Below, in pieces: positions 9,885-42,546 of a stretch of 43,818 nt of DNA. The translations under genes and the position numbers were made by a program. Numbering within the stretch: position 1 is the stretch's first letter; the number at the start of each line of letters is the position of its first letter. The notes under the pieces were generated by a model that saw nothing but the letters and a program-made list of their open reading frames with translations, did no database searches and was not told where the DNA came from. The stretch comes from Macrostomum lignano (taxonomy: Eukaryota): contig NIVC01004503.1 of the NCBI GenBank assembly GCA_002269645.1, positions 1 to 43,818 on the forward strand, written 5' to 3'.

Positions 9885-10234
9885 GTAAGTTATTTTCATC
9901 CAATTATTATCTTGTTCACGATAAGCTTTTACTCATTAAACTAGCAGATTAAGCAGAGTTAGTCGCTGCATAGGCTGTCTGCTTTGTTCTTCATAAAGCA
10001 GTAACCAAGAGCATGTGTAGCGAATTAAGATCACCCTGTCTTTTTATGCATTTAAATATTTAAGACACATTAAGACAAAGTGTGAATCAAATTCAACTAC
10101 GAGCGTATAGCAAACAAGGCAATTTAAAAGCCTTTTTGTATCTTATTTTTACTGTTTAGTCTGAACGGATTTACTAAAATGAGTTGGCTCACATTTTTTC
10201 GTTAAGCTGATCAATGCACCCCCACTCCAATCAG

Positions 10235-13853: not shown

Positions 13854-13859
13854 TTTATT
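13854..13859 (-). promoter_or_regulatory. Candidate polyadenylation signal (AATAAA, - strand) of the mucin gene
   Basis: TTTATT on the + strand, ~300 nt downstream of the predicted stop at 14161. Confidence 0.3.
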
Positions 13860-14160: not shown

Positions 14161-14350
14161 TTACACATTCACATCAATAACATCGTGCCCAGATGCGCCA
14201 TCGGCGAACGTTCCGTAATTCAAACTGGGCTGAAAAAATTCCGACAATGCTCTCACGCGACGGAAATTAACTGCGCTGGCAGCTTGCGACTCCAAGGCTG
14301 GCGGCGCCCGCTCGGGATCCATGGTTCTATGAAAATTCACGTTGCCAAAT
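14161..14350 (-). CDS. Transmembrane mucin, probable terminal exon: cytoplasmic tail FGNVNFHRTMDPERAPPALESQAASAVNFRRVRALSEFFQPSLNYGTFADGASGHDVIDVNV*
   Basis: Acceptor TACATTTTTTTAG| (+ strand CT at 14351-14352). Phase 2 matches the TM exon (AG+A = Arg). GC-rich island in AT-rich surroundings; the other two frames close quickly. Confidence 0.6.
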
Positions 14351-16329
14351 CTAAAAAAATGTATAAAACATGTCAATAGTAACACAACTGTTGAGGCTCT
14401 TGATTTGCAACAGCACCATCGATCCGCTATAATAGTAAAAAATGCGAAAACGTATTTTGCTGCAAATCAAACTTATCAACGCTGCATGAACAAACTGGAA
14501 CTGCTTTATATGAGGCTCCGCATCAGTGATGTACTAGCACACTTTGACCTACCGGTATTTTCTCTAACAGTTAAACAATTAGGTAATTTCTGGCTGTCGC
14601 TATTTAAATCAATAAATCCCGGTTTTACATAAGTAGCCATAGCCATAAAACTACGAGTACTTGGGAATTTCTGTTATATAAGCATAAAAATTACAGAACG
14701 AAGAAAAAACAAGCTAAATTTAAAGCGCATGCTTTCCAGTACATTGATTTTCGTCCTTTGATTTTAACTTTGAAGAATAAATGTTCAAAAGGAAATCAAT
14801 TTCTCTCTCTTAAAGAAGAACCCAGAAGTATGGGCCATGACAGTCAAGAGGTGCATGCGCAGTTAATATACCTGTTTGCATTCGATTTTGTGCAAACTGC
14901 GTTATATTTAGTGCCATACACACAGCGGAAACGAGCCAAGCCGAAATACATGGTTTGCCATAGACATGTGCAGAAGCCCAGCAACCAAAGTGGTCTAAAC
15001 CAAACATCATATATACACAAGATAGGGCACTCATTAACAACTTATGTGGTCATAAAATCTATTTGTAAAAAAATTGCAACTCGCGACAGCGCGAAAATCA
15101 ACTACTGAATTTAATTTCGTAAGTAGAATCTGCAGTGCATGCATCATACTTAGTTTGATTGAGTAGCTTTTTATTTAATTCATGAGAAGTTCTACCAAAT
15201 TCTTAAATATAGCGTCTATGTCCCTAGGCTGCTGAACTCAAAATTTAAGCAACCTATGTCGGCTTTTTTCGCACAAGTGACGAAAATAACAACAGCGGTC
15301 GAACTTTCCCTATCACCGCCATACAAAGTGGCCTATCTAGTGAATATAAGATCTATGGTCTAAACTAAGTTTTTTGGCTAACAAGAGGGCTTCTCATGGT
15401 CCACCAAGCTGATTCTGGAATAAGGGCCTCTATGTGTCATTTTTCTCAATTTACAAGCTATCTTGTACGAGCAATTCTTGGACAGACCAAATTAAACGCA
15501 GCTATTTCCAAATTGCTTGCTGCTTTCTATGGCCAAACCAGAAGTGGCTGACACGTCAGCCTGCTGACGAATTCGCACCAAATTGAACGCAGATTTAACC
15601 AAATAGAGCGCAAAAAGGTACAATACTCGTAGAACGAAGCACATCACCTAAAAACAACAGCTTCAGTATTAGTCATAAACTATAGATTTGCTCTCACTGC
15701 AAGAAGAATACACTGAGCTGTTATTGGCCATTTTCTCAGGTAAATTTTCTAGGTAGAGATTTCAGAAAAAACCGAGGCTAATCCTAGAGATTTGCAATCA
15801 ACTGAATCAAGCTGCAGAAAAATGGACCCAGCGATTTGCCTTTAAATGCATTAGCTACTTTACTATATTCGACACATTCCGATGCCTGTCCTTATCTATG
15901 GCCCAAAAACGACAACTGCAGTAGTGGTACGATTCATGACACCATAGCCCTAAGCTTTAGCAATGTTATCTTAAATGCAAATAAAATCTTATTGCTAAAC
16001 AAAATTTCCGCTTTCAAAGCAACAGAATTAACTCATGGAAAAAACTTTCAGGAAGAGTGCCTGTTTTGATTGAAGAAATTAAACAATCCTAGAAACTGGT
16101 ACTACTCAAACAATAAAATTGGTTTCGCAAAAAAGGTTGTCTGAGACATAGAAAAACCGTCATATTATTTCCCACTCCTTCTCAAAAAGGTGTGCGACAA
16201 AATCGGTAAAGAACTCTCGTTCTTTCACGTAAACTATCAACTATTAAAGTGTAACCTATTTCATTACTTTAACTAACATTAAAAATCTAAAAAAACTATC
16301 CTAGACTACAATTGCAATAAAAAACTTAC

Positions 16330-16414
16330 CTCTGGCGATAAAAAACAACACCGTAGCTGACCAACGGAATGAAAATAACCGCACCAATCACCGACGCAAT
16401 CGAACCGATAAGCC
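16330..16414 (-). CDS. Transmembrane mucin, TM exon (W)LIGSIASVIGAVIFIPLVSYGVVFYRQ(R)
   Basis: Acceptor GTTTTTTGTAG| and donor AG|GTAAGT. A 68-nt GT-AG intron (16415-16482) joins it in phase 1 to the repeat exon. It encodes ~24 hydrophobic residues followed by basic RQR (positive-inside rule). Confidence 0.85.
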
Positions 16415-16482
16415 CTACAAAAAACATTACTAGAGTTGCGCCAAAAAACCAAAAAAAATTTAAAAGTACAAAGTAAACCTAC

Positions 16483-19400
16483 AAGAAGGTGCTTGTGAAG
16501 GAACCAAAGGCAACGACTCAGTAGTCACGTGCTCCGTCGTAGCTTCCGGCAACCCAGTGCTGCTGATGAAGCCAGTAGTACTGCTGCTCTCCGTCGGCGG
16601 CGGTGCAGTCTCAGTAGTAGCCTCGGGACCGGCTGTTGTCCTCTCTTCTGTGCTGGCTTCTGTGCTCGCTTCCGGTGAAGCCGAGGAGCTAATAGTAGCC
16701 GACGAAGAGTCCGCAGTCGACGGCTCTGTTGTCAAAGTCGACTCCTCCGACGGCGTCACTGCCTCGTCGGTGGTGCCAGTAGTACTGCTGCTCTCCGTCG
16801 GCGGCGGTGCAGTCTCAGTAGTAGCCTCGGGACCGGCTGTTGTCCTCTCTTCTGTGCTGGCTTCTGTGCTCGCTTCCGGTGAAGCCGAGGAGCTAATAGT
16901 AGCCGACGAAGAGTCCGCAGTCGACGGCTCTGTTGTCAAAGTCGACTCCTCCGACGGCGTCACTGCCTCGTCGGTGGTGCCAGTAGTACTGCTGCTCTCC
17001 GTCGGCGGCGGTGCAGTCTCAGTAGTAGCCTCGGGACCGGCTGTTGTCCTCTCTTCTGTGCTGGCTTCTGTGCTCGCTTCCGGTGAAGCCGAGGAGCTAA
17101 TAGTAGCCGACGAAGAGTCCGCAGTCGACGGCTCTGTTGTCAAAGTCGACTCCTCCGACGGCGTCACTGCCTCGTCGGTGGTGCCAGTAGTACTGCTGCT
17201 CTCCGTCGGCGGCGGTGCAGTCTCAGTAGTAGCCTCGGGACCGGCTGTTGTCCTCTCTTCTGTGCTGGCTTCTGTGCTCGCTTCCGGTGAAGCCGAGGAG
17301 CTAATAGTAGCCGACGAAGAGTCCGCAGTCGACGGCTCTGTTGTCAAAGTCGACTCCTCCGACGGCGTCACTGCCTCGTCGGTGGTGCCAGTAGTACTGC
17401 TGCTCTCCGTCGGCGGCGGTGCAGTCTCAGTAGTAGCCTCGGGACCGGCTGTTGTCCTCTCTTCTGTGCTGGCTTCTGTGCTCGCTTCCGGTGAAGCCGA
17501 GGAGCTAATAGTAGCCGACGAAGAGTCCGCAGTCGACGGCTCTGTTGTCAAAGTCGACTCCTCCGACGGCGTCACTGCCTCGTCGGTGGTGCCAGTAGTA
17601 CTGCTGCTCTCCGTCGGCGGCGGTGCAGTCTCAGTAGTAGCCTCGGGACCGGCTGTTGTCCTCTCTTCTGTGCTGGCTTCTGTGCTCGCTTCCGGTGAAG
17701 CCGAGGAGCTAATAGTAGCCGACGAAGAGTCCGCAGTCGACGGCTCTGTTGTCAAAGTCGACTCCTCCGACGGCGTCACTGCCTCGTCGGTGGTGCCAGT
17801 AGTACTGCTGCTCTCCGTCGGCGGCGGTGCAGTCTCAGTAGTAGCCTCGGGACCGGCTGTTGTCCTCTCTTCTGTGCTGGCTTCTGTGCTCGCTTCCGGT
17901 GAAGCCGAGGAGCTAATAGTAGCCGACGAAGAGTCCGCAGTCGACGGCTCTGTTGTCAAAGTCGACTCCTCCGACGGCGTCACTGCCTCGTCGGTGGTGC
18001 CAGTAGTACTGCTGCTCTCCGTCGGCGGCGGTGCAGTCTCAGTAGTAGCCTCGGGACCGGCTGTTGTCCTCTCTTCTGTGCTGGCTTCTGTGCTCGCTTC
18101 CGGTGAAGCCGAGGAGCTAATAGTAGCCGACGAAGAGTCCGCAGTCGACGGCTCTGTTGTCAAAGTCGACTCCTCCGACGGCGTCACTGCCTCGTCGGTG
18201 GTGCCAGTAGTACTGCTGCTCTCCGTCGGCGGCGGTGCAGTCTCAGTAGTAGCCTCGGGACCGGCTGTTGTCCTCTCTTCTGTGCTGGCTTCTGTGCTCG
18301 CTTCCGGTGAAGCCGAGGAGCTAATAGTAGCCGACGAAGAGTCCGCAGTCGACGGCTCTGTTGTCAAAGTCGACTCCTCCGACGGCGTCACTGCCTCGTC
18401 GGTGGTGCCAGTAGTACTGCTGCTCTCCGTCGGCGGCGGTGCAGTCTCAGTAGTAGCCTCGGGACCGGCTGTTGTCCTCTCTTCTGTGCTGGCTTCTGTG
18501 CTCGCTTCCGGTGAAGCCGAGGAGCTAATAGTAGCCGACGAAGAGTCCGCAGTCGACGGCTCTGTTGTCAAAGTCGACTCCTCCGACGGCGTCACTGCCT
18601 CGTCGGTGGTGCCAGTAGTACTGCTGCTCTCCGTCGGCGGCGGTGCAGTCTCAGTAGTAGCCTCGGGACCGGCTGTTGTCCTCTCTTCTGTGCTGGCTTC
18701 TGTGCTCGCTTCCGGTGAAGCCGAGGAGCTAATAGTAGCCGACGAAGAGTCCGCAGTCGACGGCTCTGTTGTCAAAGTCGACTCCTCCGACGGCGTCACT
18801 GCCTCGTCGGTGGTGCCAGTAGTACTGCTGCTCTCCGTCGGCGGCGGTGCAGTCTCAGTAGTAGCCTCGGGACCGGCTGTTGTCCTCTCTTCTGTGCTGG
18901 CTTCTGTGCTCGCTTCCGGTGAAGCCGAGGAGCTAATAGTAGCCGACGAAGAGTCCGCAGTCGACGGCTCTGTTGTCAAAGTCGACTCCTCCGACGGCGT
19001 CACTGCCTCGTCGGTGGTGCCAGTAGTACTGCTGCTCTCCGTCGGCGGCGGTGCAGTCTCAGTAGTAGCCTCGGGACCGGCTGTTGTCCTCTCTTCTGTG
19101 CTGGCTTCTGTGCTCGCTTCCGGTGAAGCCGAGGAGCTAATAGTAGCCGACGAAGAGTCCGCAGTCGACGGCTCTGTTGTCAAAGTCGACTCCTCCGACG
19201 GCGTCACTGCCTCGTCGGTGGTGCCAGTAGTACTGCTGCTCTCCGTCGGCGGCGGTGCAGTCTCAGTAGTAGCCTCGGGACCGGCTGTTGTCCTCTCTTC
19301 TGTGCTGGCTTCTGTGCTCGCTTCCGGTGAAGCCGAGGAGCTAATAGTAGCCGACGAAGAGTCCGCAGTCGACGGCTCTGTTGTCAAAGTCGACTCCTCC

Positions 19401-22400
19401 GACGGCGTCACTGCCTCGTCGGTGGTGCCAGTAGTACTGCTGCTCTCCGTCGGCGGCGGTGCAGTCTCAGTAGTAGCCTCGGGACCGGCTGTTGTCCTCT
19501 CTTCTGTGCTGGCTTCTGTGCTCGCTTCCGGTGAAGCCGAGGAGCTAATAGTAGCCGACGAAGAGTCCGCAGTCGACGGCTCTGTTGTCAAAGTCGACTC
19601 CTCCGACGGCGTCACTGCCTCGTCGGTGGTGCCAGTAGTACTGCTGCTCTCCGTCGGCGGCGGTGCAGTCTCAGTAGTAGCCTCGGGACCGGCTGTTGTC
19701 CTCTCTTCTGTGCTGGCTTCTGTGCTCGCTTCCGGTGAAGCCGAGGAGCTAATAGTAGCCGACGAAGAGTCCGCAGTCGACGGCTCTGTTGTCAAAGTCG
19801 ACTCCTCCGACGGCGTCACTGCCTCGTCGGTGGTGCCAGTAGTACTGCTGCTCTCCGTCGGCGGCGGTGCAGTCTCAGTAGTAGCCTCGGGACCGGCTGT
19901 TGTCCTCTCTTCTGTGCTGGCTTCTGTGCTCGCTTCCGGTGAAGCCGAGGAGCTAATAGTAGCCGACGAAGAGTCCGCAGTCGACGGCTCTGTTGTCAAA
20001 GTCGACTCCTCCGACGGCGTCACTGCCTCGTCGGTGGTGCCAGTAGTACTGCTGCTCTCCGTCGGCGGCGGTGCAGTCTCAGTAGTAGCCTCGGGACCGG
20101 CTGTTGTCCTCTCTTCTGTGCTGGCTTCTGTGCTCGCTTCCGGTGAAGCCGAGGAGCTAATAGTAGCCGACGAAGAGTCCGCAGTCGACGGCTCTGTTGT
20201 CAAAGTCGACTCCTCCGACGGCGTCACTGCCTCGTCGGTGGTGCCAGTAGTACTGCTGCTCTCCGTCGGCGGCGGTGCAGTCTCAGTAGTAGCCTCGGGA
20301 CCGGCTGTTGTCCTCTCTTCTGTGCTGGCTTCTGTGCTCGCTTCCGGTGAAGCCGAGGAGCTAATAGTAGCCGACGAAGAGTCCGCAGTCGACGGCTCTG
20401 TTGTCAAAGTCGACTCCTCCGACGGCGTCACTGCCTCGTCGGTGGTGCCAGTAGTACTGCTGCTCTCCGTCGGCGGCGGTGCAGTCTCAGTAGTAGCCTC
20501 GGGACCGGCTGTTGTCCTCTCTTCTGTGCTGGCTTCTGTGCTCGCTTCCGGTGAAGCCGAGGAGCTAATAGTAGCCGACGAAGAGTCCGCAGTCGACGGC
20601 TCTGTTGTCAAAGTCGACTCCTCCGACGGCGTCACTGCCTCGTCGGTGGTGCCAGTAGTACTGCTGCTCTCCGTCGGCGGCGGTGCAGTCTCAGTAGTAG
20701 CCTCGGGACCGGCTGTTGTCCTCTCTTCTGTGCTGGCTTCTGTGCTCGCTTCCGGTGAAGCCGAGGAGCTAATAGTAGCCGACGAAGAGTCCGCAGTCGA
20801 CGGCTCTGTTGTCAAAGTCGACTCCTCCGACGGCGTCACTGCCTCGTCGGTGGTGCCAGTAGTACTGCTGCTCTCCGTCGGCGGCGGTGCAGTCTCAGTA
20901 GTAGCCTCGGGACCGGCTGTTGTCCTCTCTTCTGTGCTGGCTTCTGTGCTCGCTTCCGGTGAAGCCGAGGAGCTAATAGTAGCCGACGAAGAGTCCGCAG
21001 TCGACGGCTCTGTTGTCAAAGTCGACTCCTCCGACGGCGTCACTGCCTCGTCGGTGGTGCCAGTAGTACTGCTGCTCTCCGTCGGCGGCGGTGCAGTCTC
21101 AGTAGTAGCCTCGGGACCGGCTGTTGTCCTCTCTTCTGTGCTGGCTTCTGTGCTCGCTTCCGGTGAAGCCGAGGAGCTAATAGTAGCCGACGAAGAGTCC
21201 GCAGTCGACGGCTCTGTTGTCAAAGTCGACTCCTCCGACGGCGTCACTGCCTCGTCGGTGGTGCCAGTAGTACTGCTGCTCTCCGTCGGCGGCGGTGCAG
21301 TCTCAGTAGTAGCCTCGGGACCGGCTGTTGTCCTCTCTTCTGTGCTGGCTTCTGTGCTCGCTTCCGGTGAAGCCGAGGAGCTAATAGTAGCCGACGAAGA
21401 GTCCGCAGTCGACGGCTCTGTTGTCAAAGTCGACTCCTCCGACGGCGTCACTGCCTCGTCGGTGGTGCCAGTAGTACTGCTGCTCTCCGTCGGCGGCGGT
21501 GCAGTCTCAGTAGTAGCCTCGGGACCGGCTGTTGTCCTCTCTTCTGTGCTGGCTTCTGTGCTCGCTTCCGGTGAAGCCGAGGAGCTAATAGTAGCCGACG
21601 AAGAGTCCGCAGTCGACGGCTCTGTTGTCAAAGTCGACTCCTCCGACGGCGTCACTGCCTCGTCGGTGGTGCCAGTAGTACTGCTGCTCTCCGTCGGCGG
21701 CGGTGCAGTCTCAGTAGTAGCCTCGGGACCGGCTGTTGTCCTCTCTTCTGTGCTGGCTTCTGTGCTCGCTTCCGGTGAAGCCGAGGAGCTAATAGTAGCC
21801 GACGAAGAGTCCGCAGTCGACGGCTCTGTTGTCAAAGTCGACTCCTCCGACGGCGTCACTGCCTCGTCGGTGGTGCCAGTAGTACTGCTGCTCTCCGTCG
21901 GCGGCGGTGCAGTCTCAGTAGTAGCCTCGGGACCGGCTGTTGTCCTCTCTTCTGTGCTGGCTTCTGTGCTCGCTTCCGGTGAAGCCGAGGAGCTAATAGT
22001 AGCCGACGAAGAGTCCGCAGTCGACGGCTCTGTTGTCAAAGTCGACTCCTCCGACGGCGTCACTGCCTCGTCGGTGGTGCCAGTAGTACTGCTGCTCTCC
22101 GTCGGCGGCGGTGCAGTCTCAGTAGTAGCCTCGGGACCGGCTGTTGTCCTCTCTTCTGTGCTGGCTTCTGTGCTCGCTTCCGGTGAAGCCGAGGAGCTAA
22201 TAGTAGCCGACGAAGAGTCCGCAGTCGACGGCTCTGTTGTCAAAGTCGACTCCTCCGACGGCGTCACTGCCTCGTCGGTGGTGCCAGTAGTACTGCTGCT
22301 CTCCGTCGGCGGCGGTGCAGTCTCAGTAGTAGCCTCGGGACCGGCTGTTGTCCTCTCTTCTGTGCTGGCTTCTGTGCTCGCTTCCGGTGAAGCCGAGGAG

Positions 22401-25400
22401 CTAATAGTAGCCGACGAAGAGTCCGCAGTCGACGGCTCTGTTGTCAAAGTCGACTCCTCCGACGGCGTCACTGCCTCGTCGGTGGTGCCAGTAGTACTGC
22501 TGCTCTCCGTCGGCGGCGGTGCAGTCTCAGTAGTAGCCTCGGGACCGGCTGTTGTCCTCTCTTCTGTGCTGGCTTCTGTGCTCGCTTCCGGTGAAGCCGA
22601 GGAGCTAATAGTAGCCGACGAAGAGTCCGCAGTCGACGGCTCTGTTGTCAAAGTCGACTCCTCCGACGGCGTCACTGCCTCGTCGGTGGTGCCAGTAGTA
22701 CTGCTGCTCTCCGTCGGCGGCGGTGCAGTCTCAGTAGTAGCCTCGGGACCGGCTGTTGTCCTCTCTTCTGTGCTGGCTTCTGTGCTCGCTTCCGGTGAAG
22801 CCGAGGAGCTAATAGTAGCCGACGAAGAGTCCGCAGTCGACGGCTCTGTTGTCAAAGTCGACTCCTCCGACGGCGTCACTGCCTCGTCGGTGGTGCCAGT
22901 AGTACTGCTGCTCTCCGTCGGCGGCGGTGCAGTCTCAGTAGTAGCCTCGGGACCGGCTGTTGTCCTCTCTTCTGTGCTGGCTTCTGTGCTCGCTTCCGGT
23001 GAAGCCGAGGAGCTAATAGTAGCCGACGAAGAGTCCGCAGTCGACGGCTCTGTTGTCAAAGTCGACTCCTCCGACGGCGTCACTGCCTCGTCGGTGGTGC
23101 CAGTAGTACTGCTGCTCTCCGTCGGCGGCGGTGCAGTCTCAGTAGTAGCCTCGGGACCGGCTGTTGTCCTCTCTTCTGTGCTGGCTTCTGTGCTCGCTTC
23201 CGGTGAAGCCGAGGAGCTAATAGTAGCCGACGAAGAGTCCGCAGTCGACGGCTCTGTTGTCAAAGTCGACTCCTCCGACGGCGTCACTGCCTCGTCGGTG
23301 GTGCCAGTAGTACTGCTGCTCTCCGTCGGCGGCGGTGCAGTCTCAGTAGTAGCCTCGGGACCGGCTGTTGTCCTCTCTTCTGTGCTGGCTTCTGTGCTCG
23401 CTTCCGGTGAAGCCGAGGAGCTAATAGTAGCCGACGAAGAGTCCGCAGTCGACGGCTCTGTTGTCAAAGTCGACTCCTCCGACGGCGTCACTGCCTCGTC
23501 GGTGGTGCCAGTAGTACTGCTGCTCTCCGTCGGCGGCGGTGCAGTCTCAGTAGTAGCCTCGGGACCGGCTGTTGTCCTCTCTTCTGTGCTGGCTTCTGTG
23601 CTCGCTTCCGGTGAAGCCGAGGAGCTAATAGTAGCCGACGAAGAGTCCGCAGTCGACGGCTCTGTTGTCAAAGTCGACTCCTCCGACGGCGTCACTGCCT
23701 CGTCGGTGGTGCCAGTAGTACTGCTGCTCTCCGTCGGCGGCGGTGCAGTCTCAGTAGTAGCCTCGGGACCGGCTGTTGTCCTCTCTTCTGTGCTGGCTTC
23801 TGTGCTCGCTTCCGGTGAAGCCGAGGAGCTAATAGTAGCCGACGAAGAGTCCGCAGTCGACGGCTCTGTTGTCAAAGTCGACTCCTCCGACGGCGTCACT
23901 GCCTCGTCGGTGGTGCCAGTAGTACTGCTGCTCTCCGTCGGCGGCGGTGCAGTCTCAGTAGTAGCCTCGGGACCGGCTGTTGTCCTCTCTTCTGTGCTGG
24001 CTTCTGTGCTCGCTTCCGGTGAAGCCGAGGAGCTAATAGTAGCCGACGAAGAGTCCGCAGTCGACGGCTCTGTTGTCAAAGTCGACTCCTCCGACGGCGT
24101 CACTGCCTCGTCGGTGGTGCCAGTAGTACTGCTGCTCTCCGTCGGCGGCGGTGCAGTCTCAGTAGTAGCCTCGGGACCGGCTGTTGTCCTCTCTTCTGTG
24201 CTGGCTTCTGTGCTCGCTTCCGGTGAAGCCGAGGAGCTAATAGTAGCCGACGAAGAGTCCGCAGTCGACGGCTCTGTTGTCAAAGTCGACTCCTCCGACG
24301 GCGTCACTGCCTCGTCGGTGGTGCCAGTAGTACTGCTGCTCTCCGTCGGCGGCGGTGCAGTCTCAGTAGTAGCCTCGGGACCGGCTGTTGTCCTCTCTTC
24401 TGTGCTGGCTTCTGTGCTCGCTTCCGGTGAAGCCGAGGAGCTAATAGTAGCCGACGAAGAGTCCGCAGTCGACGGCTCTGTTGTCAAAGTCGACTCCTCC
24501 GACGGCGTCACTGCCTCGTCGGTGGTGCCAGTAGTACTGCTGCTCTCCGTCGGCGGCGGTGCAGTCTCAGTAGTAGCCTCGGGACCGGCTGTTGTCCTCT
24601 CTTCTGTGCTGGCTTCTGTGCTCGCTTCCGGTGAAGCCGAGGAGCTAATAGTAGCCGACGAAGAGTCCGCAGTCGACGGCTCTGTTGTCAAAGTCGACTC
24701 CTCCGACGGCGTCACTGCCTCGTCGGTGGTGCCAGTAGTACTGCTGCTCTCCGTCGGCGGCGGTGCAGTCTCAGTAGTAGCCTCGGGACCGGCTGTTGTC
24801 CTCTCTTCTGTGCTGGCTTCTGTGCTCGCTTCCGGTGAAGCCGAGGAGCTAATAGTAGCCGACGAAGAGTCCGCAGTCGACGGCTCTGTTGTCAAAGTCG
24901 ACTCCTCCGACGGCGTCACTGCCTCGTCGGTGGTGCCAGTAGTACTGCTGCTCTCCGTCGGCGGCGGTGCAGTCTCAGTAGTAGCCTCGGGACCGGCTGT
25001 TGTCCTCTCTTCTGTGCTGGCTTCTGTGCTCGCTTCCGGTGAAGCCGAGGAGCTAATAGTAGCCGACGAAGAGTCCGCAGTCGACGGCTCTGTTGTCAAA
25101 GTCGACTCCTCCGACGGCGTCACTGCCTCGTCGGTGGTGCCAGTAGTACTGCTGCTCTCCGTCGGCGGCGGTGCAGTCTCAGTAGTAGCCTCGGGACCGG
25201 CTGTTGTCCTCTCTTCTGTGCTGGCTTCTGTGCTCGCTTCCGGTGAAGCCGAGGAGCTAATAGTAGCCGACGAAGAGTCCGCAGTCGACGGCTCTGTTGT
25301 CAAAGTCGACTCCTCCGACGGCGTCACTGCCTCGTCGGTGGTGCCAGTAGTACTGCTGCTCTCCGTCGGCGGCGGTGCAGTCTCAGTAGTAGCCTCGGGA

Positions 25401-28400
25401 CCGGCTGTTGTCCTCTCTTCTGTGCTGGCTTCTGTGCTCGCTTCCGGTGAAGCCGAGGAGCTAATAGTAGCCGACGAAGAGTCCGCAGTCGACGGCTCTG
25501 TTGTCAAAGTCGACTCCTCCGACGGCGTCACTGCCTCGTCGGTGGTGCCAGTAGTACTGCTGCTCTCCGTCGGCGGCGGTGCAGTCTCAGTAGTAGCCTC
25601 GGGACCGGCTGTTGTCCTCTCTTCTGTGCTGGCTTCTGTGCTCGCTTCCGGTGAAGCCGAGGAGCTAATAGTAGCCGACGAAGAGTCCGCAGTCGACGGC
25701 TCTGTTGTCAAAGTCGACTCCTCCGACGGCGTCACTGCCTCGTCGGTGGTGCCAGTAGTACTGCTGCTCTCCGTCGGCGGCGGTGCAGTCTCAGTAGTAG
25801 CCTCGGGACCGGCTGTTGTCCTCTCTTCTGTGCTGGCTTCTGTGCTCGCTTCCGGTGAAGCCGAGGAGCTAATAGTAGCCGACGAAGAGTCCGCAGTCGA
25901 CGGCTCTGTTGTCAAAGTCGACTCCTCCGACGGCGTCACTGCCTCGTCGGTGGTGCCAGTAGTACTGCTGCTCTCCGTCGGCGGCGGTGCAGTCTCAGTA
26001 GTAGCCTCGGGACCGGCTGTTGTCCTCTCTTCTGTGCTGGCTTCTGTGCTCGCTTCCGGTGAAGCCGAGGAGCTAATAGTAGCCGACGAAGAGTCCGCAG
26101 TCGACGGCTCTGTTGTCAAAGTCGACTCCTCCGACGGCGTCACTGCCTCGTCGGTGGTGCCAGTAGTACTGCTGCTCTCCGTCGGCGGCGGTGCAGTCTC
26201 AGTAGTAGCCTCGGGACCGGCTGTTGTCCTCTCTTCTGTGCTGGCTTCTGTGCTCGCTTCCGGTGAAGCCGAGGAGCTAATAGTAGCCGACGAAGAGTCC
26301 GCAGTCGACGGCTCTGTTGTCAAAGTCGACTCCTCCGACGGCGTCACTGCCTCGTCGGTGGTGCCAGTAGTACTGCTGCTCTCCGTCGGCGGCGGTGCAG
26401 TCTCAGTAGTAGCCTCGGGACCGGCTGTTGTCCTCTCTTCTGTGCTGGCTTCTGTGCTCGCTTCCGGTGAAGCCGAGGAGCTAATAGTAGCCGACGAAGA
26501 GTCCGCAGTCGACGGCTCTGTTGTCAAAGTCGACTCCTCCGACGGCGTCACTGCCTCGTCGGTGGTGCCAGTAGTACTGCTGCTCTCCGTCGGCGGCGGT
26601 GCAGTCTCAGTAGTAGCCTCGGGACCGGCTGTTGTCCTCTCTTCTGTGCTGGCTTCTGTGCTCGCTTCCGGTGAAGCCGAGGAGCTAATAGTAGCCGACG
26701 AAGAGTCCGCAGTCGACGGCTCTGTTGTCAAAGTCGACTCCTCCGACGGCGTCACTGCCTCGTCGGTGGTGCCAGTAGTACTGCTGCTCTCCGTCGGCGG
26801 CGGTGCAGTCTCAGTAGTAGCCTCGGGACCGGCTGTTGTCCTCTCTTCTGTGCTGGCTTCTGTGCTCGCTTCCGGTGAAGCCGAGGAGCTAATAGTAGCC
26901 GACGAAGAGTCCGCAGTCGACGGCTCTGTTGTCAAAGTCGACTCCTCCGACGGCGTCACTGCCTCGTCGGTGGTGCCAGTAGTACTGCTGCTCTCCGTCG
27001 GCGGCGGTGCAGTCTCAGTAGTAGCCTCGGGACCGGCTGTTGTCCTCTCTTCTGTGCTGGCTTCTGTGCTCGCTTCCGGTGAAGCCGAGGAGCTAATAGT
27101 AGCCGACGAAGAGTCCGCAGTCGACGGCTCTGTTGTCAAAGTCGACTCCTCCGACGGCGTCACTGCCTCGTCGGTGGTGCCAGTAGTACTGCTGCTCTCC
27201 GTCGGCGGCGGTGCAGTCTCAGTAGTAGCCTCGGGACCGGCTGTTGTCCTCTCTTCTGTGCTGGCTTCTGTGCTCGCTTCCGGTGAAGCCGAGGAGCTAA
27301 TAGTAGCCGACGAAGAGTCCGCAGTCGACGGCTCTGTTGTCAAAGTCGACTCCTCCGACGGCGTCACTGCCTCGTCGGTGGTGCCAGTAGTACTGCTGCT
27401 CTCCGTCGGCGGCGGTGCAGTCTCAGTAGTAGCCTCGGGACCGGCTGTTGTCCTCTCTTCTGTGCTGGCTTCTGTGCTCGCTTCCGGTGAAGCCGAGGAG
27501 CTAATAGTAGCCGACGAAGAGTCCGCAGTCGACGGCTCTGTTGTCAAAGTCGACTCCTCCGACGGCGTCACTGCCTCGTCGGTGGTGCCAGTAGTACTGC
27601 TGCTCTCCGTCGGCGGCGGTGCAGTCTCAGTAGTAGCCTCGGGACCGGCTGTTGTCCTCTCTTCTGTGCTGGCTTCTGTGCTCGCTTCCGGTGAAGCCGA
27701 GGAGCTAATAGTAGCCGACGAAGAGTCCGCAGTCGACGGCTCTGTTGTCAAAGTCGACTCCTCCGACGGCGTCACTGCCTCGTCGGTGGTGCCAGTAGTA
27801 CTGCTGCTCTCCGTCGGCGGCGGTGCAGTCTCAGTAGTAGCCTCGGGACCGGCTGTTGTCCTCTCTTCTGTGCTGGCTTCTGTGCTCGCTTCCGGTGAAG
27901 CCGAGGAGCTAATAGTAGCCGACGAAGAGTCCGCAGTCGACGGCTCTGTTGTCAAAGTCGACTCCTCCGACGGCGTCACTGCCTCGTCGGTGGTGCCAGT
28001 AGTACTGCTGCTCTCCGTCGGCGGCGGTGCAGTCTCAGTAGTAGCCTCGGGACCGGCTGTTGTCCTCTCTTCTGTGCTGGCTTCTGTGCTCGCTTCCGGT
28101 GAAGCCGAGGAGCTAATAGTAGCCGACGAAGAGTCCGCAGTCGACGGCTCTGTTGTCAAAGTCGACTCCTCCGACGGCGTCACTGCCTCGTCGGTGGTGC
28201 CAGTAGTACTGCTGCTCTCCGTCGGCGGCGGTGCAGTCTCAGTAGTAGCCTCGGGACCGGCTGTTGTCCTCTCTTCTGTGCTGGCTTCTGTGCTCGCTTC
28301 CGGTGAAGCCGAGGAGCTAATAGTAGCCGACGAAGAGTCCGCAGTCGACGGCTCTGTTGTCAAAGTCGACTCCTCCGACGGCGTCACTGCCTCGTCGGTG

Positions 28401-31400
28401 GTGCCAGTAGTACTGCTGCTCTCCGTCGGCGGCGGTGCAGTCTCAGTAGTAGCCTCGGGACCGGCTGTTGTCCTCTCTTCTGTGCTGGCTTCTGTGCTCG
28501 CTTCCGGTGAAGCCGAGGAGCTAATAGTAGCCGACGAAGAGTCCGCAGTCGACGGCTCTGTTGTCAAAGTCGACTCCTCCGACGGCGTCACTGCCTCGTC
28601 GGTGGTGCCAGTAGTACTGCTGCTCTCCGTCGGCGGCGGTGCAGTCTCAGTAGTAGCCTCGGGACCGGCTGTTGTCCTCTCTTCTGTGCTGGCTTCTGTG
28701 CTCGCTTCCGGTGAAGCCGAGGAGCTAATAGTAGCCGACGAAGAGTCCGCAGTCGACGGCTCTGTTGTCAAAGTCGACTCCTCCGACGGCGTCACTGCCT
28801 CGTCGGTGGTGCCAGTAGTACTGCTGCTCTCCGTCGGCGGCGGTGCAGTCTCAGTAGTAGCCTCGGGACCGGCTGTTGTCCTCTCTTCTGTGCTGGCTTC
28901 TGTGCTCGCTTCCGGTGAAGCCGAGGAGCTAATAGTAGCCGACGAAGAGTCCGCAGTCGACGGCTCTGTTGTCAAAGTCGACTCCTCCGACGGCGTCACT
29001 GCCTCGTCGGTGGTGCCAGTAGTACTGCTGCTCTCCGTCGGCGGCGGTGCAGTCTCAGTAGTAGCCTCGGGACCGGCTGTTGTCCTCTCTTCTGTGCTGG
29101 CTTCTGTGCTCGCTTCCGGTGAAGCCGAGGAGCTAATAGTAGCCGACGAAGAGTCCGCAGTCGACGGCTCTGTTGTCAAAGTCGACTCCTCCGACGGCGT
29201 CACTGCCTCGTCGGTGGTGCCAGTAGTACTGCTGCTCTCCGTCGGCGGCGGTGCAGTCTCAGTAGTAGCCTCGGGACCGGCTGTTGTCCTCTCTTCTGTG
29301 CTGGCTTCTGTGCTCGCTTCCGGTGAAGCCGAGGAGCTAATAGTAGCCGACGAAGAGTCCGCAGTCGACGGCTCTGTTGTCAAAGTCGACTCCTCCGACG
29401 GCGTCACTGCCTCGTCGGTGGTGCCAGTAGTACTGCTGCTCTCCGTCGGCGGCGGTGCAGTCTCAGTAGTAGCCTCGGGACCGGCTGTTGTCCTCTCTTC
29501 TGTGCTGGCTTCTGTGCTCGCTTCCGGTGAAGCCGAGGAGCTAATAGTAGCCGACGAAGAGTCCGCAGTCGACGGCTCTGTTGTCAAAGTCGACTCCTCC
29601 GACGGCGTCACTGCCTCGTCGGTGGTGCCAGTAGTACTGCTGCTCTCCGTCGGCGGCGGTGCAGTCTCAGTAGTAGCCTCGGGACCGGCTGTTGTCCTCT
29701 CTTCTGTGCTGGCTTCTGTGCTCGCTTCCGGTGAAGCCGAGGAGCTAATAGTAGCCGACGAAGAGTCCGCAGTCGACGGCTCTGTTGTCAAAGTCGACTC
29801 CTCCGACGGCGTCACTGCCTCGTCGGTGGTGCCAGTAGTACTGCTGCTCTCCGTCGGCGGCGGTGCAGTCTCAGTAGTAGCCTCGGGACCGGCTGTTGTC
29901 CTCTCTTCTGTGCTGGCTTCTGTGCTCGCTTCCGGTGAAGCCGAGGAGCTAATAGTAGCCGACGAAGAGTCCGCAGTCGACGGCTCTGTTGTCAAAGTCG
30001 ACTCCTCCGACGGCGTCACTGCCTCGTCGGTGGTGCCAGTAGTACTGCTGCTCTCCGTCGGCGGCGGTGCAGTCTCAGTAGTAGCCTCGGGACCGGCTGT
30101 TGTCCTCTCTTCTGTGCTGGCTTCTGTGCTCGCTTCCGGTGAAGCCGAGGAGCTAATAGTAGCCGACGAAGAGTCCGCAGTCGACGGCTCTGTTGTCAAA
30201 GTCGACTCCTCCGACGGCGTCACTGCCTCGTCGGTGGTGCCAGTAGTACTGCTGCTCTCCGTCGGCGGCGGTGCAGTCTCAGTAGTAGCCTCGGGACCGG
30301 CTGTTGTCCTCTCTTCTGTGCTCGCTTCCGGTGAAGCCGAGGAGCTAATAGTAGCCGACGAAGAGTCCGCAGTCGACGGCTCTGTTGTCAAAGTCGACTC
30401 CTCCGACGGCGTCACTGCCTCGTCGGTGGTGCCAGTAGTACTGCTGCTCTCCGTCGGCGGCGGTGCAGTCTCAGTAGTAGCCTCGGGACCGGCTGTTGTC
30501 CTCTCTTCTGTGCTGGCTTCTGTGCTCGCTTCCGGTGAAGCCGAGGAGCTAATAGTAGCCGACGAAGAGTCCGCAGTCGACGGCTCTGTTGTCAAAGTCG
30601 ACTCCTCCGACGGCGTCACTGCCTCGTCGGTGGTGCCAGTAGTACTGCTGCTCTCCGTCGGCGGCGGTGCAGTCTCAGTAGTAGCCTCGGGACCGGCTGT
30701 TGTCCTCTCTTCTGTGCTGGCTTCTGTGCTCGCTTCCGGTGAAGCCGAGGAGCTAATAGTAGCCGACGAAGAGTCCGCAGTCGACGGCTCTGTTGTCAAA
30801 GTCGACTCCTCCGACGGCGTCACTGCCTCGTCGGTGGTGCCAGTAGTACTGCTGCTCTCCGTCGGCGGCGGTGCAGTCTCAGTAGTAGCCTCGGGACCGG
30901 CTGTTGTCCTCTCTTCTGTGCTGGCTTCTGTGCTCGCTTCCGGTGAAGCCGAGGAGCTAATAGTAGCCGACGAAGAGTCCGCAGTCGACGGCTCTGTTGT
31001 CAAAGTCGACTCCTCCGACGGCGTCACTGCCTCGTCGGTGGTGCCAGTAGTACTGCTGCTCTCCGTCGGCGGCGGTGCAGTCTCAGTAGTAGCCTCGGGA
31101 CCGGCTGTTGTCCTCTCTTCTGTGCTGGCTTCTGTGCTCGCTTCCGGTGAAGCCGAGGAGCTAATAGTAGCCGACGAAGAGTCCGCAGTCGACGGCTCTG
31201 TTGTCAAAGTCGACTCCTCCGACGGCGTCACTGCCTCGTCGGTGGTGCCAGTAGTACTGCTGCTCTCCGTCGGCGGCGGTGCAGTCTCAGTAGTAGCCTC
31301 GGGACCGGCTGTTGTCCTCTCTTCTGTGCTGGCTTCTGTGCTCGCTTCCGGTGAAGCCGAGGAGCTAATAGTAGCCGACGAAGAGTCCGCAGTCGACGGC

Positions 31401-34400
31401 TCTGTTGTCAAAGTCGACTCCTCCGACGGCGTCACTGCCTCGTCGGTGGTGCCAGTAGTACTGCTGCTCTCCGTCGGCGGCGGTGCAGTCTCAGTAGTAG
31501 CCTCGGGACCGGCTGTTGTCCTCTCTTCTGTGCTCGTGCTTTCCGGTGAAGCCGAGGAGCTAATAGTAGCCGACGAAGAGTCCGCAGTCGACGGCTCTGT
31601 TGTCAAAGTCGACTCCTCCGACGGCGTCACTGCCTCGTCGGTGGTGCCAGTAGTACTGCTGCTCTCCGTCGGCGGCGGTGCAGTCTCAGTAGTAGCCTCG
31701 GGACCGGCTGTTGTCCTCTCTTCTGTGCTGGCTTCTGTGCTCGCTTCCGGTGAAGCCGAGGAGCTAATAGTAGCCGACGAAGAGTCCGCAGTCGACGGCT
31801 CTGTTGTCAAAGTCGACTCCTCCGACGGCGTCACTGCCTCGTCGGTGGTGCCAGTAGTACTGCTGCTCTCCGTCGGCGGCGGTGCAGTCTCAGTAGTAGC
31901 CTCGGGACCGGCTGTTGTCCTCTCTTCTGTGCTGGCTTCTGTGCTCGCTTCCGGTGAAGCCGAGGAGCTAATAGTAGCCGACGAAGAGTCCGCAGTCGAC
32001 GGCTCTGTTGTCAAAGTCGACTCCTCCGACGGCGTCACTGCCTCGTCGGTGGTGCCAGTAGTACTGCTGCTCTCCGTCGGCGGCGGTGCAGTCTCAGTAG
32101 TAGCCTCGGGACCGGCTGTTGTCCTCTCTTCTGTGCTGGCTTCTGTGCTCGCTTCCGGTGAAGCCGAGGAGCTAATAGTAGCCGACGAAGAGTCCGCAGT
32201 CGACGGCTCTGTTGTCAAAGTCGACTCCTCCGACGGCGTCACTGCCTCGTCGGTGGTGCCAGTAGTACTGCTGCTCTCCGTCGGCGGCGGTGCAGTCTCA
32301 GTAGTAGCCTCGGGACCGGCTGTTGTCCTCTCTTCTGTGCTGGCTTCTGTGCTCGCTTCCGGTGAAGCCGAGGAGCTAATAGTAGCCGACGAAGAGTCCG
32401 CAGTCGACGGCTCTGTTGTCAAAGTCGACTCCTCCGACGGCGTCACTGCCTCGTCGGTGGTGCCAGTAGTACTGCTGCTCTCCGTCGGCGGCGGTGCAGT
32501 CTCAGTAGTAGCCTCGGGACCGGCTGTTGTCCTCTCTTCTGTGCTGGCTTCTGTGCTCGCTTCCGGTGAAGCCGAGGAGCTAATAGTAGCCGACGAAGAG
32601 TCCGCAGTCGACGGCTCTGTTGTCAAAGTCGACTCCTCCGACGGCGTCACTGCCTCGTCGGTGGTGCCAGTAGTACTGCTGCTCTCCGTCGGCGGCGGTG
32701 CAGTCTCAGTAGTAGCCTCGGGACCGGCTGTTGTCCTCTCTTCTGTGCTGGCTTCTGTGCTCGCTTCCGGTGAAGCCGAGGAGCTAATAGTAGCCGACGA
32801 AGAGTCCGCAGTCGACGGCTCTGTTGTCAAAGTCGACTCCTCCGACGGCGTCACTGCCTCGTCGGTGGTGCCAGTAGTACTGCTGCTCTCCGTCGGCGGC
32901 GGTGCAGTCTCAGTAGTAGCCTCGGGACCGGCTGTTGTCCTCTCTTCTGTGCTGGCTTCTGTGCTCGCTTCCGGTGAAGCCGAGGAGCTAATAGTAGCCG
33001 ACGAAGAGTCCGCAGTCGACGGCTCTGTTGTCAAAGTCGACTCCTCCGACGGCGTCACTGCCTCGTCGGTGGTGCCAGTAGTACTGCTGCTCTCCGTCGG
33101 CGGCGGTGCAGTCTCAGTAGTAGCCTCGGGACCGGCTGTTGTCTCTCTTCTGTGCTCGCTTCCGGTGAAGCCGAGGAGCTAATAGTAGCCGACGAAGAGT
33201 CCGCAGTCGACGGCTCTGTTGTCAAAGTCGACTCCTCCGACGGCGTCACTGCCTCGTCGGTGGTGCCAGTAGTACTGCTGCTCTCCGTCGGCGGCGGTGC
33301 AGTCTCAGTAGTAGCCTCGGGACCGGCTGTTGTCCTCTCTTCTGTGCTGGCTTCCGGTGAAGCCGAGGAGCTAATAGTAGCCGACGAAGAGTCCGCAGTC
33401 GACGGCTCTGTTGTCAAAGTCGACTCCTCCGACGGCGTCACTGCCTCGTCGGTGGTGCCAGTAGTACTGCTGCTCTCCGTCGGCGGCGGTGCAGTCTCAG
33501 TAGTAGCCTCGGGACCGGCTGTTGTCCTCTCTTCTGTGCTGGCTTCTGTGCTCGCTTCCGGTGAAGCCGAGGAGCTAATAGTAGCCGACGAAGAGTCCGC
33601 AGTCGACGGCTCTGTTGTCAAAGTCGACTCCTCCGACGGCGTCACTGCCTCGTCGGTGGTGCCAGTAGTACTGCTGCTCTCCGTCGGCGGCGGTGCAGTC
33701 TCAGTAGTAGCCTCGGGACCGGCTGTTGTCCTCTCTTCTGTGCTGGCTTCTGTGCTCGCTTCCGGTGAAGCCGAGGAGCTAATAGTAGCCGACGAAGAGT
33801 CCGCAGTCGACGGCTCTGTTGTCAAAGTCGACTCCTCCGACGGCGTCACTGCCTCGTCGGTGGTGCCAGTAGTACTGCTGCTCTCCGTCGGCGGCGGTGC
33901 AGTCTCAGTAGTAGCCTCGGGACCGGCTGTTGTCCTCTCTTCTGTGCTGGCTTCTGTGCTCGCTTCCGGTGAAGCCGAGGAGCTAATAGTAGCCGACGAA
34001 GAGTCCGCAGTCGACGGCTCTGTTGTCAAAGTCGACTCCTCCGACGGCGTCACTGCCTCGTCGGTGGTGCCAGTAGTACTGCTGCTCTCCGTCGGCGGCG
34101 GTGCAGTCTCAGTAGTAGCCTCGGGACCGGCTGTTGTGCTCGCTTCCGGTGAAGCCGAGGAGCTAATAGTAGCCGACGAAGAGTCCGCAGTCGACGGCTC
34201 TGTTGTCAAAGTCGACTCCTCCGACGGCGTCACTGCCTCGTCGGTGGTGCCAGTAGTACTGCTGCTCTCCGTCGGCGGCGGTGCAGTCTCAGTAGTAGCC
34301 TCGGGACCGGCTGTTGTCCTCTCTTCTGTGCTGGCTTCTGTGCTCGCTTCCGGTGAAGCCGAGGAGCTAATAGTAGCCGACGAAGAGTCCGCAGTCGACG

Positions 34401-35714
34401 GCTCTGTTGTCAAAGTCGACTCCTCCGACGGCGTCACTGCCTCGTCGGTGGTGCCAGTAGTACTGCTGCTCTCCGTCGGCGGCGGTGCAGTCTCAGTAGT
34501 AGCCTCGGGACCGGCTGTTGTCCTCTCTTCTGTGCTGGCTTCTGTGCTCGCTTCCGGTGAAGCCGAGGAGCTAATAGTAGCCGACGAAGAGTCCGCAGTC
34601 GACGGCTCTGTTGTCAAAGTCGACTCCTCCGACGGCGTCACTGCCTCGTCGGTGGTGCCAGTAGTACTGCTGCTCTCCGTCGGCGGCGGTGCAGTCTCAG
34701 TAGTAGCCTCGGGACCGGCTGTTGTCCTCTCTTCTGTGCTGGCTTCTGTGCTCGCTTCCGGTGAAGCCGAGGAGCTAATAGTAGCCGACGAAGAGTCCGC
34801 AGTCGACGGCTCTGTTGTCAAAGTCGACTCCTCCGACGGCGTCACTGCCTCGTCGGTGGTGCCAGTAGTACTGCTGCTCTCCGTCGGCGGCGGTGCAGTC
34901 TCAGTAGTAGCCTCGGGACCGGCTGTTGTCCTCTCTTCTGTGCTGGCTTCTGTGCTCGCTTCCGGTGAAGCCGAGGAGCTAATAGTAGCCGACGAAGAGT
35001 CCGCAGTCGACGGCTCTGTTGTCAAAGTCGACTCCTCCGACGGCGTCACTGCCTCGTCGGTGGTGCCAGTAGTACTGCTGCTCTCCGTCGGCGGCGGTGC
35101 AGTCTCAGTAGTAGCCTCGGGACCGGCTGTTGTCCTCTCTTCTGTGCTGGCTTCTGTGCTCGCTTCCGGTGAAGCCGAGGAGCTAATAGTAGCCGACGAA
35201 GAGTCCGCAGTCGACGGCTCTGTTGTCAAAGTCGACTCCTCCGACGGCGTCACTGCCTCGTCGGTGGTGCCAGTAGTACTGCTGCTCTCCGTCGGCGGCG
35301 GTGCAGTCTCAGTAGTAGCCTCGGGACCGGCTGTTGTCCTCTCTTCTGTGCTGGCTTCTGTGCTCGCTTCCGGTGAAGCCGAGGAGCTAATAGTAGCCGA
35401 CGAAGAGTCCGCAGTCGACGGCTCTGTTGTCAAAGTCGACTCCTCCGACGGCGTCACTGCCTCGTCGGTGGTGCCAGTAGTACTGCTGCTCTCCGTCGGC
35501 GGCGGTGCAGTCTCAGTAGTAGCCTCGGGACCGGCTGTTGTCCTCTCTTCTGTGCTGGCTTCTGTGCTCGCTTCCGGTGAAGCCGAGGAGCTAATAGTAG
35601 CCGACGAAGAGTCCGCAGTCGACGGCTCTGTTGTCAAAGTCGACTCCTCCGACGGCGTCACTGCCTCGTCGGTGGTGCCAGTAGTACTGCTGCTCTCCGT
35701 CGGCGGCGGTGCAG
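16483..35714 (-). CDS. Transmembrane mucin, giant PTS-repeat exon (94 x 68 aa; TPSEESTLTTEPSTADSSSATISSSASPEASTEASTEERTTAGPEATTETAPPPTESSSTTGTTDEAV); one 1-nt deletion frameshift at ~33143
   Basis: ORFs 16460-33058 and 33055-35661 share the unit. The unit contains 18 T, 15 S, 7 P, 11 E, 2 D, 1 R and no C, N or K. A unique S/T-rich linker (GFISSTGLPEATTEHVTTESLPLVPSQAPS) precedes donor T|GTAGGT at 16482. Confidence 0.88.
16571..35714. repeat. 204-bp coding tandem array: 94 units plus 38 bp (19,144 bp), with five shortened variant units
   Basis: Lines recur every 1020 nt (5x204). Variants: -12 (~30320), -9 (~31535), -13 (~33143), -12 (~33350), -24 (~34137). 19144+70 = 94x204+38. Confidence 0.97.
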
Positions 35715-36086
35715 AATTTTTTCAAGCATTCGGTTTGGCACAGTTTGTGAATTTCGGTTTGGCACAGTTTGTGAATTTCGGTTTTTAATTTCGGTTTGGA
35801 GTTCTTGTTTTCTTTTATTTATTACCTTGGTAGTGTTAGATGGTATATAGTGTTTTTTCTTTGTAGTATAAACTGTATCCTTCCGGTTTACGTTTTGGGG
35901 TGTTGCTGTAGGGTGTTGCATAAAATTGTTTCGATCTGTGCCTTTTTTGTTGGTTGTTTGTGCCGCCTGTGCCAAGTAGTTGTTAGTTTTGTTGCTGCGT
36001 TGCTTCTGCCGGTTGTACTGCAGGAAGGCTACAGTGGCGATGAGCAGAGTTAATCCGAGGAGAACGGCGGCTGAGTACGTCTTCAT
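35715..36086 (-). CDS. Possible N-terminal segment of the mucin with a signal peptide or signal anchor (MKTYSAAVLLGLTLLIATVAFL...), out of frame with the array by 1 nt
   Basis: ATG with A at -3, a basic n-region and a 17-residue hydrophobic core; sequons NKT and NTT. One extra base in the A6 run at ~35716-35722 would fuse it to APPPTESS. Composition is very different from the array, so an unrelated insertion or misjoin is not excluded. Confidence 0.45.
35729..35799. repeat. Short tandem duplication: 2 x 24 bp TTCGGTTTGGCACAGTTTGTGAAT plus two partial TTCGGTTT copies
   Basis: Read directly; translated as NRNSQTVP x2 on the - strand. Confidence 0.9.
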
Positions 36087-40762: not shown

Positions 40763-40856
40763 AACAGAGCAACAAGTCTGCAAGAGACAGACACAGAGAT
40801 ATCAAAAAAGGACAATGCAGTTAAACAAATCATTGCAATTTTAACTCGGCCAGAAT

Positions 40857-42534: not shown

Positions 42535-42546
42535 GCGGTAACTCAC

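Follow-up and report, generated by a model that had tools for sequence, protein, structure and literature searches.

The 43,818-nucleotide (nt) contig NIVC01004503.1 of the genome assembly GCA_002269645.1, analyzed here along its full length and referred to as the window, carries on its minus strand what we judge, at a probability of roughly 0.75, to be a genuine gene of Macrostomum lignano for a type-I membrane-tethered mucin-like glycoprotein. The encoded protein would start with a signal peptide and a head of ~100 residues rich in Asn, Lys and Thr, followed by ~94 near-identical, acidic Pro/Thr/Ser (PTS) repeats of 68 residues. These would lead into a 30-residue stalk, one transmembrane (TM) helix with the sequence YRQR behind it, and a 63-residue cytoplasmic tail, and no folded extracellular module would be present. 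An earlier note on this DNA had considered a flatworm as the host, and the source species is indeed a flatworm.

The dominant feature of the locus is a tandem array at positions 16571-35714, in which Tandem Repeats Finder detects a period of 204 nt (~94 copies, 99-100% identity). Cutting the minus strand at one fixed anchor gives 94 full units, each of 204 nt or 68 codons, plus a partial unit of 36 nt. A match at all 204 positions is found for 89 of the 94 units. The remaining five differ by length only (-24, -12, -13, -9 and -12 nt), and all of these variants affect a 12-nt sub-repeat inside the unit and belong to the first 27 units. The minus-strand unit translates as APPPTESSSTTGTTDEAVTPSEESTLTTEPSTADSSSATISSSASPEASTEASTEERTTAGPEATTET, which is 48.5% Ser+Thr (26% Thr, 22% Ser) and 10% Pro, has a net charge of -12 and lacks Cys, Asn and Lys. 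These values reproduce the earlier description of a 68-residue minus-strand Ser/Thr repeat without Cys, Asn or Lys, with ~49% Ser+Thr and a charge of about -12. The long Pro/Thr/Ser-rich tandem-repeat domain by which membrane mucins are recognized is thus present.

Could the array instead be a non-coding minisatellite, whose open reading frame (ORF) arises by chance from a period that is a multiple of three? Both strands are open, the plus strand along the full length of the array, and the window is rich in other tandem arrays, in a genome of which tandem and simple repeats make up 15%. The 204-nt unit is open in at least one of the six frames in 59% of composition-matched shuffles (P = 0.59); an open frame is therefore expected by chance, and the ORF alone is no evidence for coding. 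The composition of the frame is a different matter. None of 20,000 shuffles attained 48.5% Ser+Thr in any frame (the maximum was 41%), and none attained the 63% of a single base (C) that is seen at codon position 2. The array has a GC content of 61%, compared to 40-48% in the flanks, and its frame runs on into the stalk, a phased TM exon and an annotated, conserved tail exon. A minisatellite origin is thus hardly credible. Synonymous codons are diverse inside a single unit (six codons for Ser, four for Thr, four for Ala), and the compositional simplicity therefore resides at the protein level and not at the DNA level. The minus-strand frame of the array is a real mucin-type coding repeat, and the antisense ORF is its by-product. 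We rejected the plus-strand ORF as a gene in its own right: it has no Met and no flanking features, and its composition lies within chance. The in-frame length variants were also considered as a sign of selection and were rejected, as slippage in the 12-nt sub-repeat accounts for them.

The 3' end of the gene is on the minus strand as well. In frame with the repeats, the array is followed by a unique stalk, FISSTGLPEATTEHVTTESLPLVPSQAPS, and the first base of a Trp codon (16483-16570); the stalk comprises 29 codons before a GTAGGT donor. By its splice sites, intron 1 is read as 68 nt long (16415-16482; GTAGGT ... TTTTTTGTAG). It is followed by the TM exon of 85 nt (16330-16414), which encodes (W)LIGSIASVIGAVIFIPLVSYGVVFYRQ(R), is entered in phase 1 and is left in phase 2 at the consensus donor AG/GTAAGT. 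Intron 2 (14351-16329; GTAAGT ... TTTTTTTAG) is 1,979 nt long and has consensus splice sites. The last exon (14161-14350) encodes the cytoplasmic tail, 63 residues including the split Arg codon, and terminates with a TAA at 14163-14161. A candidate polyadenylation signal, AATAAA, can be read on the same strand at 13854-13859, ~300 nt downstream of the stop codon. The exon and intron coordinates in the earlier note, its introns of 68 and 1,979 nt and its phases 1 and 2 all proved to be as it gave them, and the anatomy of the 3' end is confirmed.

The TM exon specifies a helix of 25 residues with a 19-residue Kyte-Doolittle mean (KD19) of 2.33, and then the stop-transfer residues YRQR. Stretches that match TM hydrophobicity occur at only 8 of 47,612 six-frame positions of the flanks. 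The locus thus has a single TM helix after the repeats and a cytoplasmic tail, as a membrane mucin does. A distance of ~30 residues between the last repeat and the membrane had been proposed, in agreement with the 30-residue unique stalk found here. In the tail (window 14164-14352, minus strand), a near-duplicate, NVNFHR and AVNFRR, can be seen by eye. A Y-G-T-F motif (YxxPhi-type) and a C-terminal V-N-V are also visible, and these could be sorting or PDZ-type signals.

A second contig of the assembly, NIVC01001120.1, is 97.8% identical to the window over 10.8 kb and is a different genomic copy of the locus, with a divergence of about 1.3%. Its comparison with the window separates exons from introns. 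The stalk (88 nt), the TM exon (85 nt) and the tail exon (190 nt) show no differences, whereas intron 1 has undergone nine change events (68 nt in the window and 76 nt in the second copy, with donor and acceptor unchanged) and the first 309 nt of intron 2 contain ten changes. Changes affect 0 of the 173 positions of stalk plus TM exon, and 19 of the 377 intronic positions that flank them (Fisher p = 8e-4); with the TM exon as the only exonic sequence, p = 0.03. Since intron 1 has diverged and changed in size while the exons have not, the splice model is supported. The TM exon is under constraint between the two copies. The absence of changes in the tail exon is uninformative alone, because the adjoining 1.67 kb of intron 2 is also nearly unchanged, with one difference. 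Beyond the gene, the 22-nt and 34-nt arrays of the window are unalignable between the two copies (gap from window position 7583 to 6805).

Database searches returned two protein models for the locus, both from M. lignano. The spliced C-terminus matched one protein among 5.8 billion clusters, UniProt A0A1I8IZW4, a 116-residue fragment whose automatic name, "TonB-dependent receptor", is an obvious misnomer. With 100% identity, the fragment holds the end of the repeats, the first half of the stalk and all of the tail, and it shares the acceptors of both the TM exon and the tail exon with our model. The tail exon alone matched one 53-residue protein among 1.84 billion representatives. Its coding sequence (CDS) is annotated in GenBank on NIVC01001120.1 (GCA_002269645.1, Mlig_3_7), on the strand equivalent to the minus strand of the window, and consists of the last 53 codons of the tail exon. 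The placement of the gene on the minus strand with the same tail exon is thus supported by two independent annotations.

The Mlig_3_7 annotation was built from transcripts guided by RNA sequencing (RNA-seq), and those overlapping repeats were filtered out (PMC5730564). Because of this filter, only a stub of the mucin gene was annotated. Since the stub stems from an RNA-seq-guided annotation, it is nevertheless indirect evidence for a minus-strand transcript. The 53-residue tail protein shares a 90% cluster with a 458-residue protein (P0003), which is a clustering artefact; the partner is unrelated and, judged by eye from its sequence, portal-like.

Among deposited protein models, A0A1I8IZW4 alone extends across the junction between repeats and tail, and it also raises the alternative of a secreted mucin without an anchor. 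In that model, a donor after GAGCAC is joined to a 23-nt micro-exon and then to the tail exon; in a variant of the same idea, an alternative donor would put the TM exon out of frame and lead to an early stop. The deposited model requires two weak donors (GTGACT and GTGATT) besides the 23-nt exon, and it ignores the consensus donors GTAGGT and GTAAGT, which give an in-phase 25-residue helix followed by basic residues. It also leaves the invariance of the whole 85-nt exon between copies unexplained. The fragment derives from ML2, an earlier and error-rich assembly, and its splicing is regarded here as a work-around of the gene predictor in that assembly. We therefore consider an anchorless product improbable, and continue with the membrane-tethered protein.

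On the 5' side, an in-frame stop is followed by the first ATG of the frame (36086-36084), which opens a signal-peptide-like segment, MKTYSAAVLLGLTLLIATVA/F (36027-36086), with a Kyte-Doolittle 19-residue mean of 2.2. The small residues T-V-A precede a plausible cleavage site, and a putative signal peptide is a plausible assignment for this segment. The adjoining N-terminal region (35723-36026, minus strand) is unique, rich in Asn, Lys, Gln and Thr, and open but without homologues; the head, searched against proteins together with one repeat unit, gave no match. The head contains two N-x-T sequons, at residues 32 and 84. No stop interrupts its frame over 122 codons, compared with six and five stops in the two alternative frames (P = 0.006 on composition-matched shuffles). 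A short upstream ORF, encoding MQRQRSQPRE and a stop (window 36083-36115, minus strand), lies out of frame, and its TGA overlaps the mucin ATG (..GAATGA..). It may be a translational control element, or may have arisen by chance.

When two 1-nt repairs are made and the two introns are removed, the joined CDS is 19,881 nt long and encodes 6,626 residues. These include 3,142 Ser+Thr, roughly 1,230 Asp and Glu (19%) and no Cys, and the net charge is -1,109. The peptide mass before addition of glycans is about 655 kDa and the computed pI is near 4. Hydropathy peaks of the joined protein are limited to residues 1-7 and 6533-6544. S-x-E motifs occur four times per repeat unit, 370 in all. No Pfam domain was found in the N-terminal head or in the C-terminal 132 residues (E <= 0.1 for the latter). 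Given the repairs, the arithmetic of the earlier note (19,881 nt, 6,626 residues, ~3,100 Ser/Thr, a charge near -1,100) was recomputed exactly. Its statement that the protein has no SEA, EGF or Cys module also holds, with no Pfam domain at either end and zero Cys. An intact 6,626-residue protein, however, depends on two assumed 1-nt repairs, since the assembled frame is broken twice.

Several points weigh against the reading of this locus as a functional membrane-mucin gene. The assembled frame from the ATG at 36086 ends after 142 codons, and when the first break is mended, it ends at codon 1,010; the frame as assembled does not run uninterrupted from signal peptide to tail. Unit 5 of the second copy has the same pair of indels as the unit in which the second break lies, at the same offsets. 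The TM exon and the N-terminal head are absent from the proteins in the 5.8 billion clusters and 1.84 billion representatives, and A0A1I8IZW4 uses the TM exon only for its first 23 nt, in a different frame and without a TM helix. The model is least secure at its 5' end, which was derived from the window sequence. Our inferences are the signal peptide, the glycosylation, the location at the surface, the function and the intactness of this copy. Finally, acidic neighbors of Ser and Thr disfavor several N-acetylgalactosamine (GalNAc) transferases, so the ~3,100 glycosylation sites are an upper bound.

The first break coincides with an A6 run (35717-35722) that lies where the head meets the first repeat; the repeat frame has a TGA there, at 35724-35722. 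One A added to this run joins the two frames, which is the repair made in the earlier note. Alternatively, a candidate phase-0 intron of 131 nt (35695-35825, minus strand; AAG/GTAATA ... GACGGAG/AGC) would give a clean translation of 6,582 residues without repair of this break. The candidate is weak, because its acceptor has no T-rich tract like those of the two supported introns. The second break is located in unit 12, a 191-nt variant at 33110-33300 of the minus strand, and the upstream frame stops at 33057-33055. This unit combines a -12 deletion with the loss of one G from a GG doublet (GAGAGGACA to GAGAGACA, about position 33143). Repair of either break is an assumption, as each may be an assembly error or a real frameshift.

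The second copy allows a limited comparison of the repeats. The contig (positions 1-1900) terminates inside the array, and its last nine units are readable. Their frame is shifted by six indel events, namely 1-nt deletions within homopolymer runs of G/C, plus one insertion of 2 nt. Three units are 192 or 191 nt long and four substitutions are present, where the window has consensus units. One synonymous type accounts for two of the substitutions and the other two are non-synonymous, too few for a test of selection. The recurrence of the -12/-1 pair suggests a real variant unit that has been propagated. The GG run at the second break is among the 24 G/C runs that each unit contains, and all six 1-nt deletions in the repeats of the second copy fall in such runs; the probability that the offset is shared by chance is therefore roughly 0.07-0.2.

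These observations bear on the possibility that frameshifting has recently disabled the copy in the window, which would then be a paralogue or allele of the mucin gene, and that an intact copy elsewhere carries the function. Such a copy would make, at most, a truncated secreted product of ~1,010 residues without the TM helix. Two frame breaks within 20 kb are what this view predicts, and the -12/-1 pair of the 191-nt unit is common to both copies, although that coincidence has the appreciable chance probability given above. In the DV1 line, duplicated blocks with >=95% identity amount to 180 Mb of the genome (PMC5730564), a background in which redundant copies can decay. However, an A6 run and a GG doublet, the sites of the two breaks, are places where long reads tend to contain errors, and the array has no other stops or substitutions. 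Past the breaks, the stalk, TM and tail exons are unchanged between copies while the introns have diverged. We consider a disabled copy a substantial possibility, though the less probable one.

A related question is whether the length and homogeneity of the array are partly products of assembly (collapse, expansion or over-polishing), the true membrane mucin being of another size and perhaps much shorter or longer. The identity of 89 of the 94 units, with all variants confined to the first 27, is suspicious in this respect, and the contig of the second copy could not span the array. The last nine units of that copy include 192- and 191-nt units and four substitutions relative to the consensus here, but such differences are explicable if it is a different genomic copy. 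Young variable number tandem repeats (VNTRs) in mucin genes can be near-identical, and the window bridges the array with unique sequence at both sides. A contribution of assembly is unlikely in our view, but less so than a secreted or non-coding origin.

If the membrane-tethered protein is made as modeled, its Ser/Thr-rich repeats would be densely O-glycosylated in the Golgi during passage through the secretory pathway. S-x-E is the consensus of secretory-pathway kinases of the Fam20C type, and phosphorylation of these motifs could be an alternative or additional modification of the repeats. O-glycans recognized by PNA have been reported for M. lignano (PMC6410801, PMC8621496). Glycans, together with the ~1,230 backbone carboxylates, would stretch the chain into an extended anionic brush, whose reach would be about 1.3-1.6 μm for a complete ectodomain of ~6,500 residues. 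With its anchor in the apical membrane, the brush could keep the surface hydrated and fend off particles and microbes, and also the cationic glue that the worm itself produces. The rigid, anionic bristle or anti-adhesive coat proposed earlier is a conjecture that the present results do not themselves support.

The gene is real and almost unannotated, but it does not specify a new kind of molecule, as domain-free membrane mucins are well known. Membrane mucins without a SEA domain include MUC21/epiglycanin, MUC22, endomucin/MUC14, CD43 and PSGL-1, as well as Msb2 in yeast. The contrast drawn in the earlier note with vertebrate transmembrane mucins is therefore true only of the SEA/EGF subset (MUC1, 3, 4, 12, 13, 16 and 17). 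A listing of transmembrane mucins is available (PMC11985918). MUC21, MUC22, endomucin, CD43 and PSGL-1 resemble the M. lignano protein, whose signal peptide is putative, in having a signal peptide, PTS repeats, a short stalk, a TM helix and a short tail, and in lacking SEA, EGF, vWD and Cys-rich modules. Their presumed role is likewise that of an extended anti-adhesive or hydrating brush. The likeness is one of architectural class and not of family, since no sequence homology was detected; the searches with the TM segment and tail returned only A0A1I8IZW4 and the 53-residue self-match, and none of the named SEA-less mucins. The flatworm protein is also much longer (about 6,400 repeat residues), and its 68-residue units are almost perfectly identical, unlike those of the vertebrate proteins. 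Its backbone is itself acidic (19% Asp+Glu), whereas SEA-less sialomucins rely on sialic acid or sulfate.

The SEA mucins MUC1, MUC3, MUC12, MUC13, MUC16 and MUC17 are, like this protein, giant type-I proteins with PTS repeats and a short tail, and MUC12, MUC17 and MUC16, with thousands of residues, are comparable in size. They differ from it in the SEA domain, the autoproteolytic site and the EGF modules, none of which is present here, and only 30 residues separate the repeats of this protein from the membrane. The modules typical of MUC4 (NIDO, AMOP, vWD, EGF and Cys-rich) had no Pfam match in the head or C-terminus, and Cys is absent altogether. The fungal proteins Msb2 and Hkr1 also pass the membrane once, have a short tail and a large ectodomain of Ser/Thr-rich repeats, and are devoid of a SEA domain. 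However, they belong to another kingdom, show no homology, are far smaller and shed the ectodomain for signaling, while the M. lignano protein gives no indication of a cleavage site.

Within the same phylum, SmPoMuc of Schistosoma mansoni, the laminated-layer apomucins of Echinococcus and the mucin-like proteins of Fasciola share lineage-specific PTS tandem repeats and rapid VNTR evolution with the protein described here. They are small secreted proteins of parasites, for which no module of TM helix plus tail has been described, and the protein database searches revealed no similarity to them.

Regeneration and reversible bioadhesion are studied in M. lignano as a laboratory model, and literature searches turned up no account of a protein of this kind in the species. 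Its surface glycocalyx has been stained and discussed in the adhesion literature, and to our knowledge no core protein has been named; the locus is a concrete candidate for one. Both Mlig-ap1 and Mlig-ap2, which are adhesion proteins, are, like this mucin, giant, highly repetitive, glycosylated and extracellular (PMC6410801). They differ in being secreted by glands and cationic (Lys/Arg repeats in Mlig-ap1), and in possessing vWD, TIL, EGF and lectin-type domains (PMC6410801). By comparison, the mucin would be membrane-anchored, polyanionic and domain-free, and it is more likely a counterpart of the glue, or a shield, than a glue itself.

In the published model of adhesion, cationic Mlig-ap1 connects to the microvillar glycocalyx of the anchor cells, and a small anionic molecule brings about release (PMC6410801). 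It is conceivable, though improbable, that the mucin forms the glycocalyx of the anchor-cell microvilli in the adhesive organs, or of the nearby epidermis, and is bound electrostatically by the Lys/Arg repeats of Mlig-ap1. Only charge complementarity and the statement on Mlig-ap1 and the glycocalyx in that paper (PMC6410801) lead to this suggestion. If it is true, the small anionic release factor would compete against the mucin, and a knockdown would either abolish attachment or cause the worm to stick to its own glue.

Current annotation reduces the gene to a misnamed 116-residue fragment and a 53-residue CDS, which illustrates how giant VNTR genes are lost from transcript-based annotation that filters repeats. 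The unique head and tail are clean targets for in situ hybridization and RNA interference, and a role in hydration, anti-fouling, avoidance of self-gluing or docking of the glue is directly testable.

The surroundings of the gene contain two other ORFs with domain matches. Just upstream and on the same strand, the ORF at 41999-43003 (minus) opens with a match to the TADA2A-like third domain (Pfam PF22941, E = 5.6e-23) before it enters a 25-nt minisatellite (42096-42538). It is probably an exon of a transcriptional adapter 2 gene; a protein search with it gave no database match at E <= 1e-20. Exact look-ups of this ORF, of the ORF at 35658-36086 (minus) and of A0A1I8IZW4 led to no recorded contig. 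Downstream of the 3' end of the mucin gene, the ORF at 9253-9888 (plus) contains an SH3 domain (PF00018, E = 1.1e-7) after low-complexity sequence rich in Ser and Gln, and is an exon of an unrelated gene. Scans of the window for Rfam families and tRNAs were empty.

Ten further tandem arrays are present in the window, several of which yield long but meaningless ORFs. On the downstream side of the mucin gene, they are located at 112-400 (period 37), 3412-3528 (period 4), 3917-4166 (period 4), 5680-6916 (period 22) and 7581-7988 (period 34). On the upstream side, they are located at 37157-39241 (period 42), 40026-40768 (period 24), 41135-41541 (period 21), 42096-42538 (period 25) and 43062-43812 (period 30). 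Their number fits the share of the M. lignano genome, 15%, that consists of tandem and simple repeats (PMC5730564).

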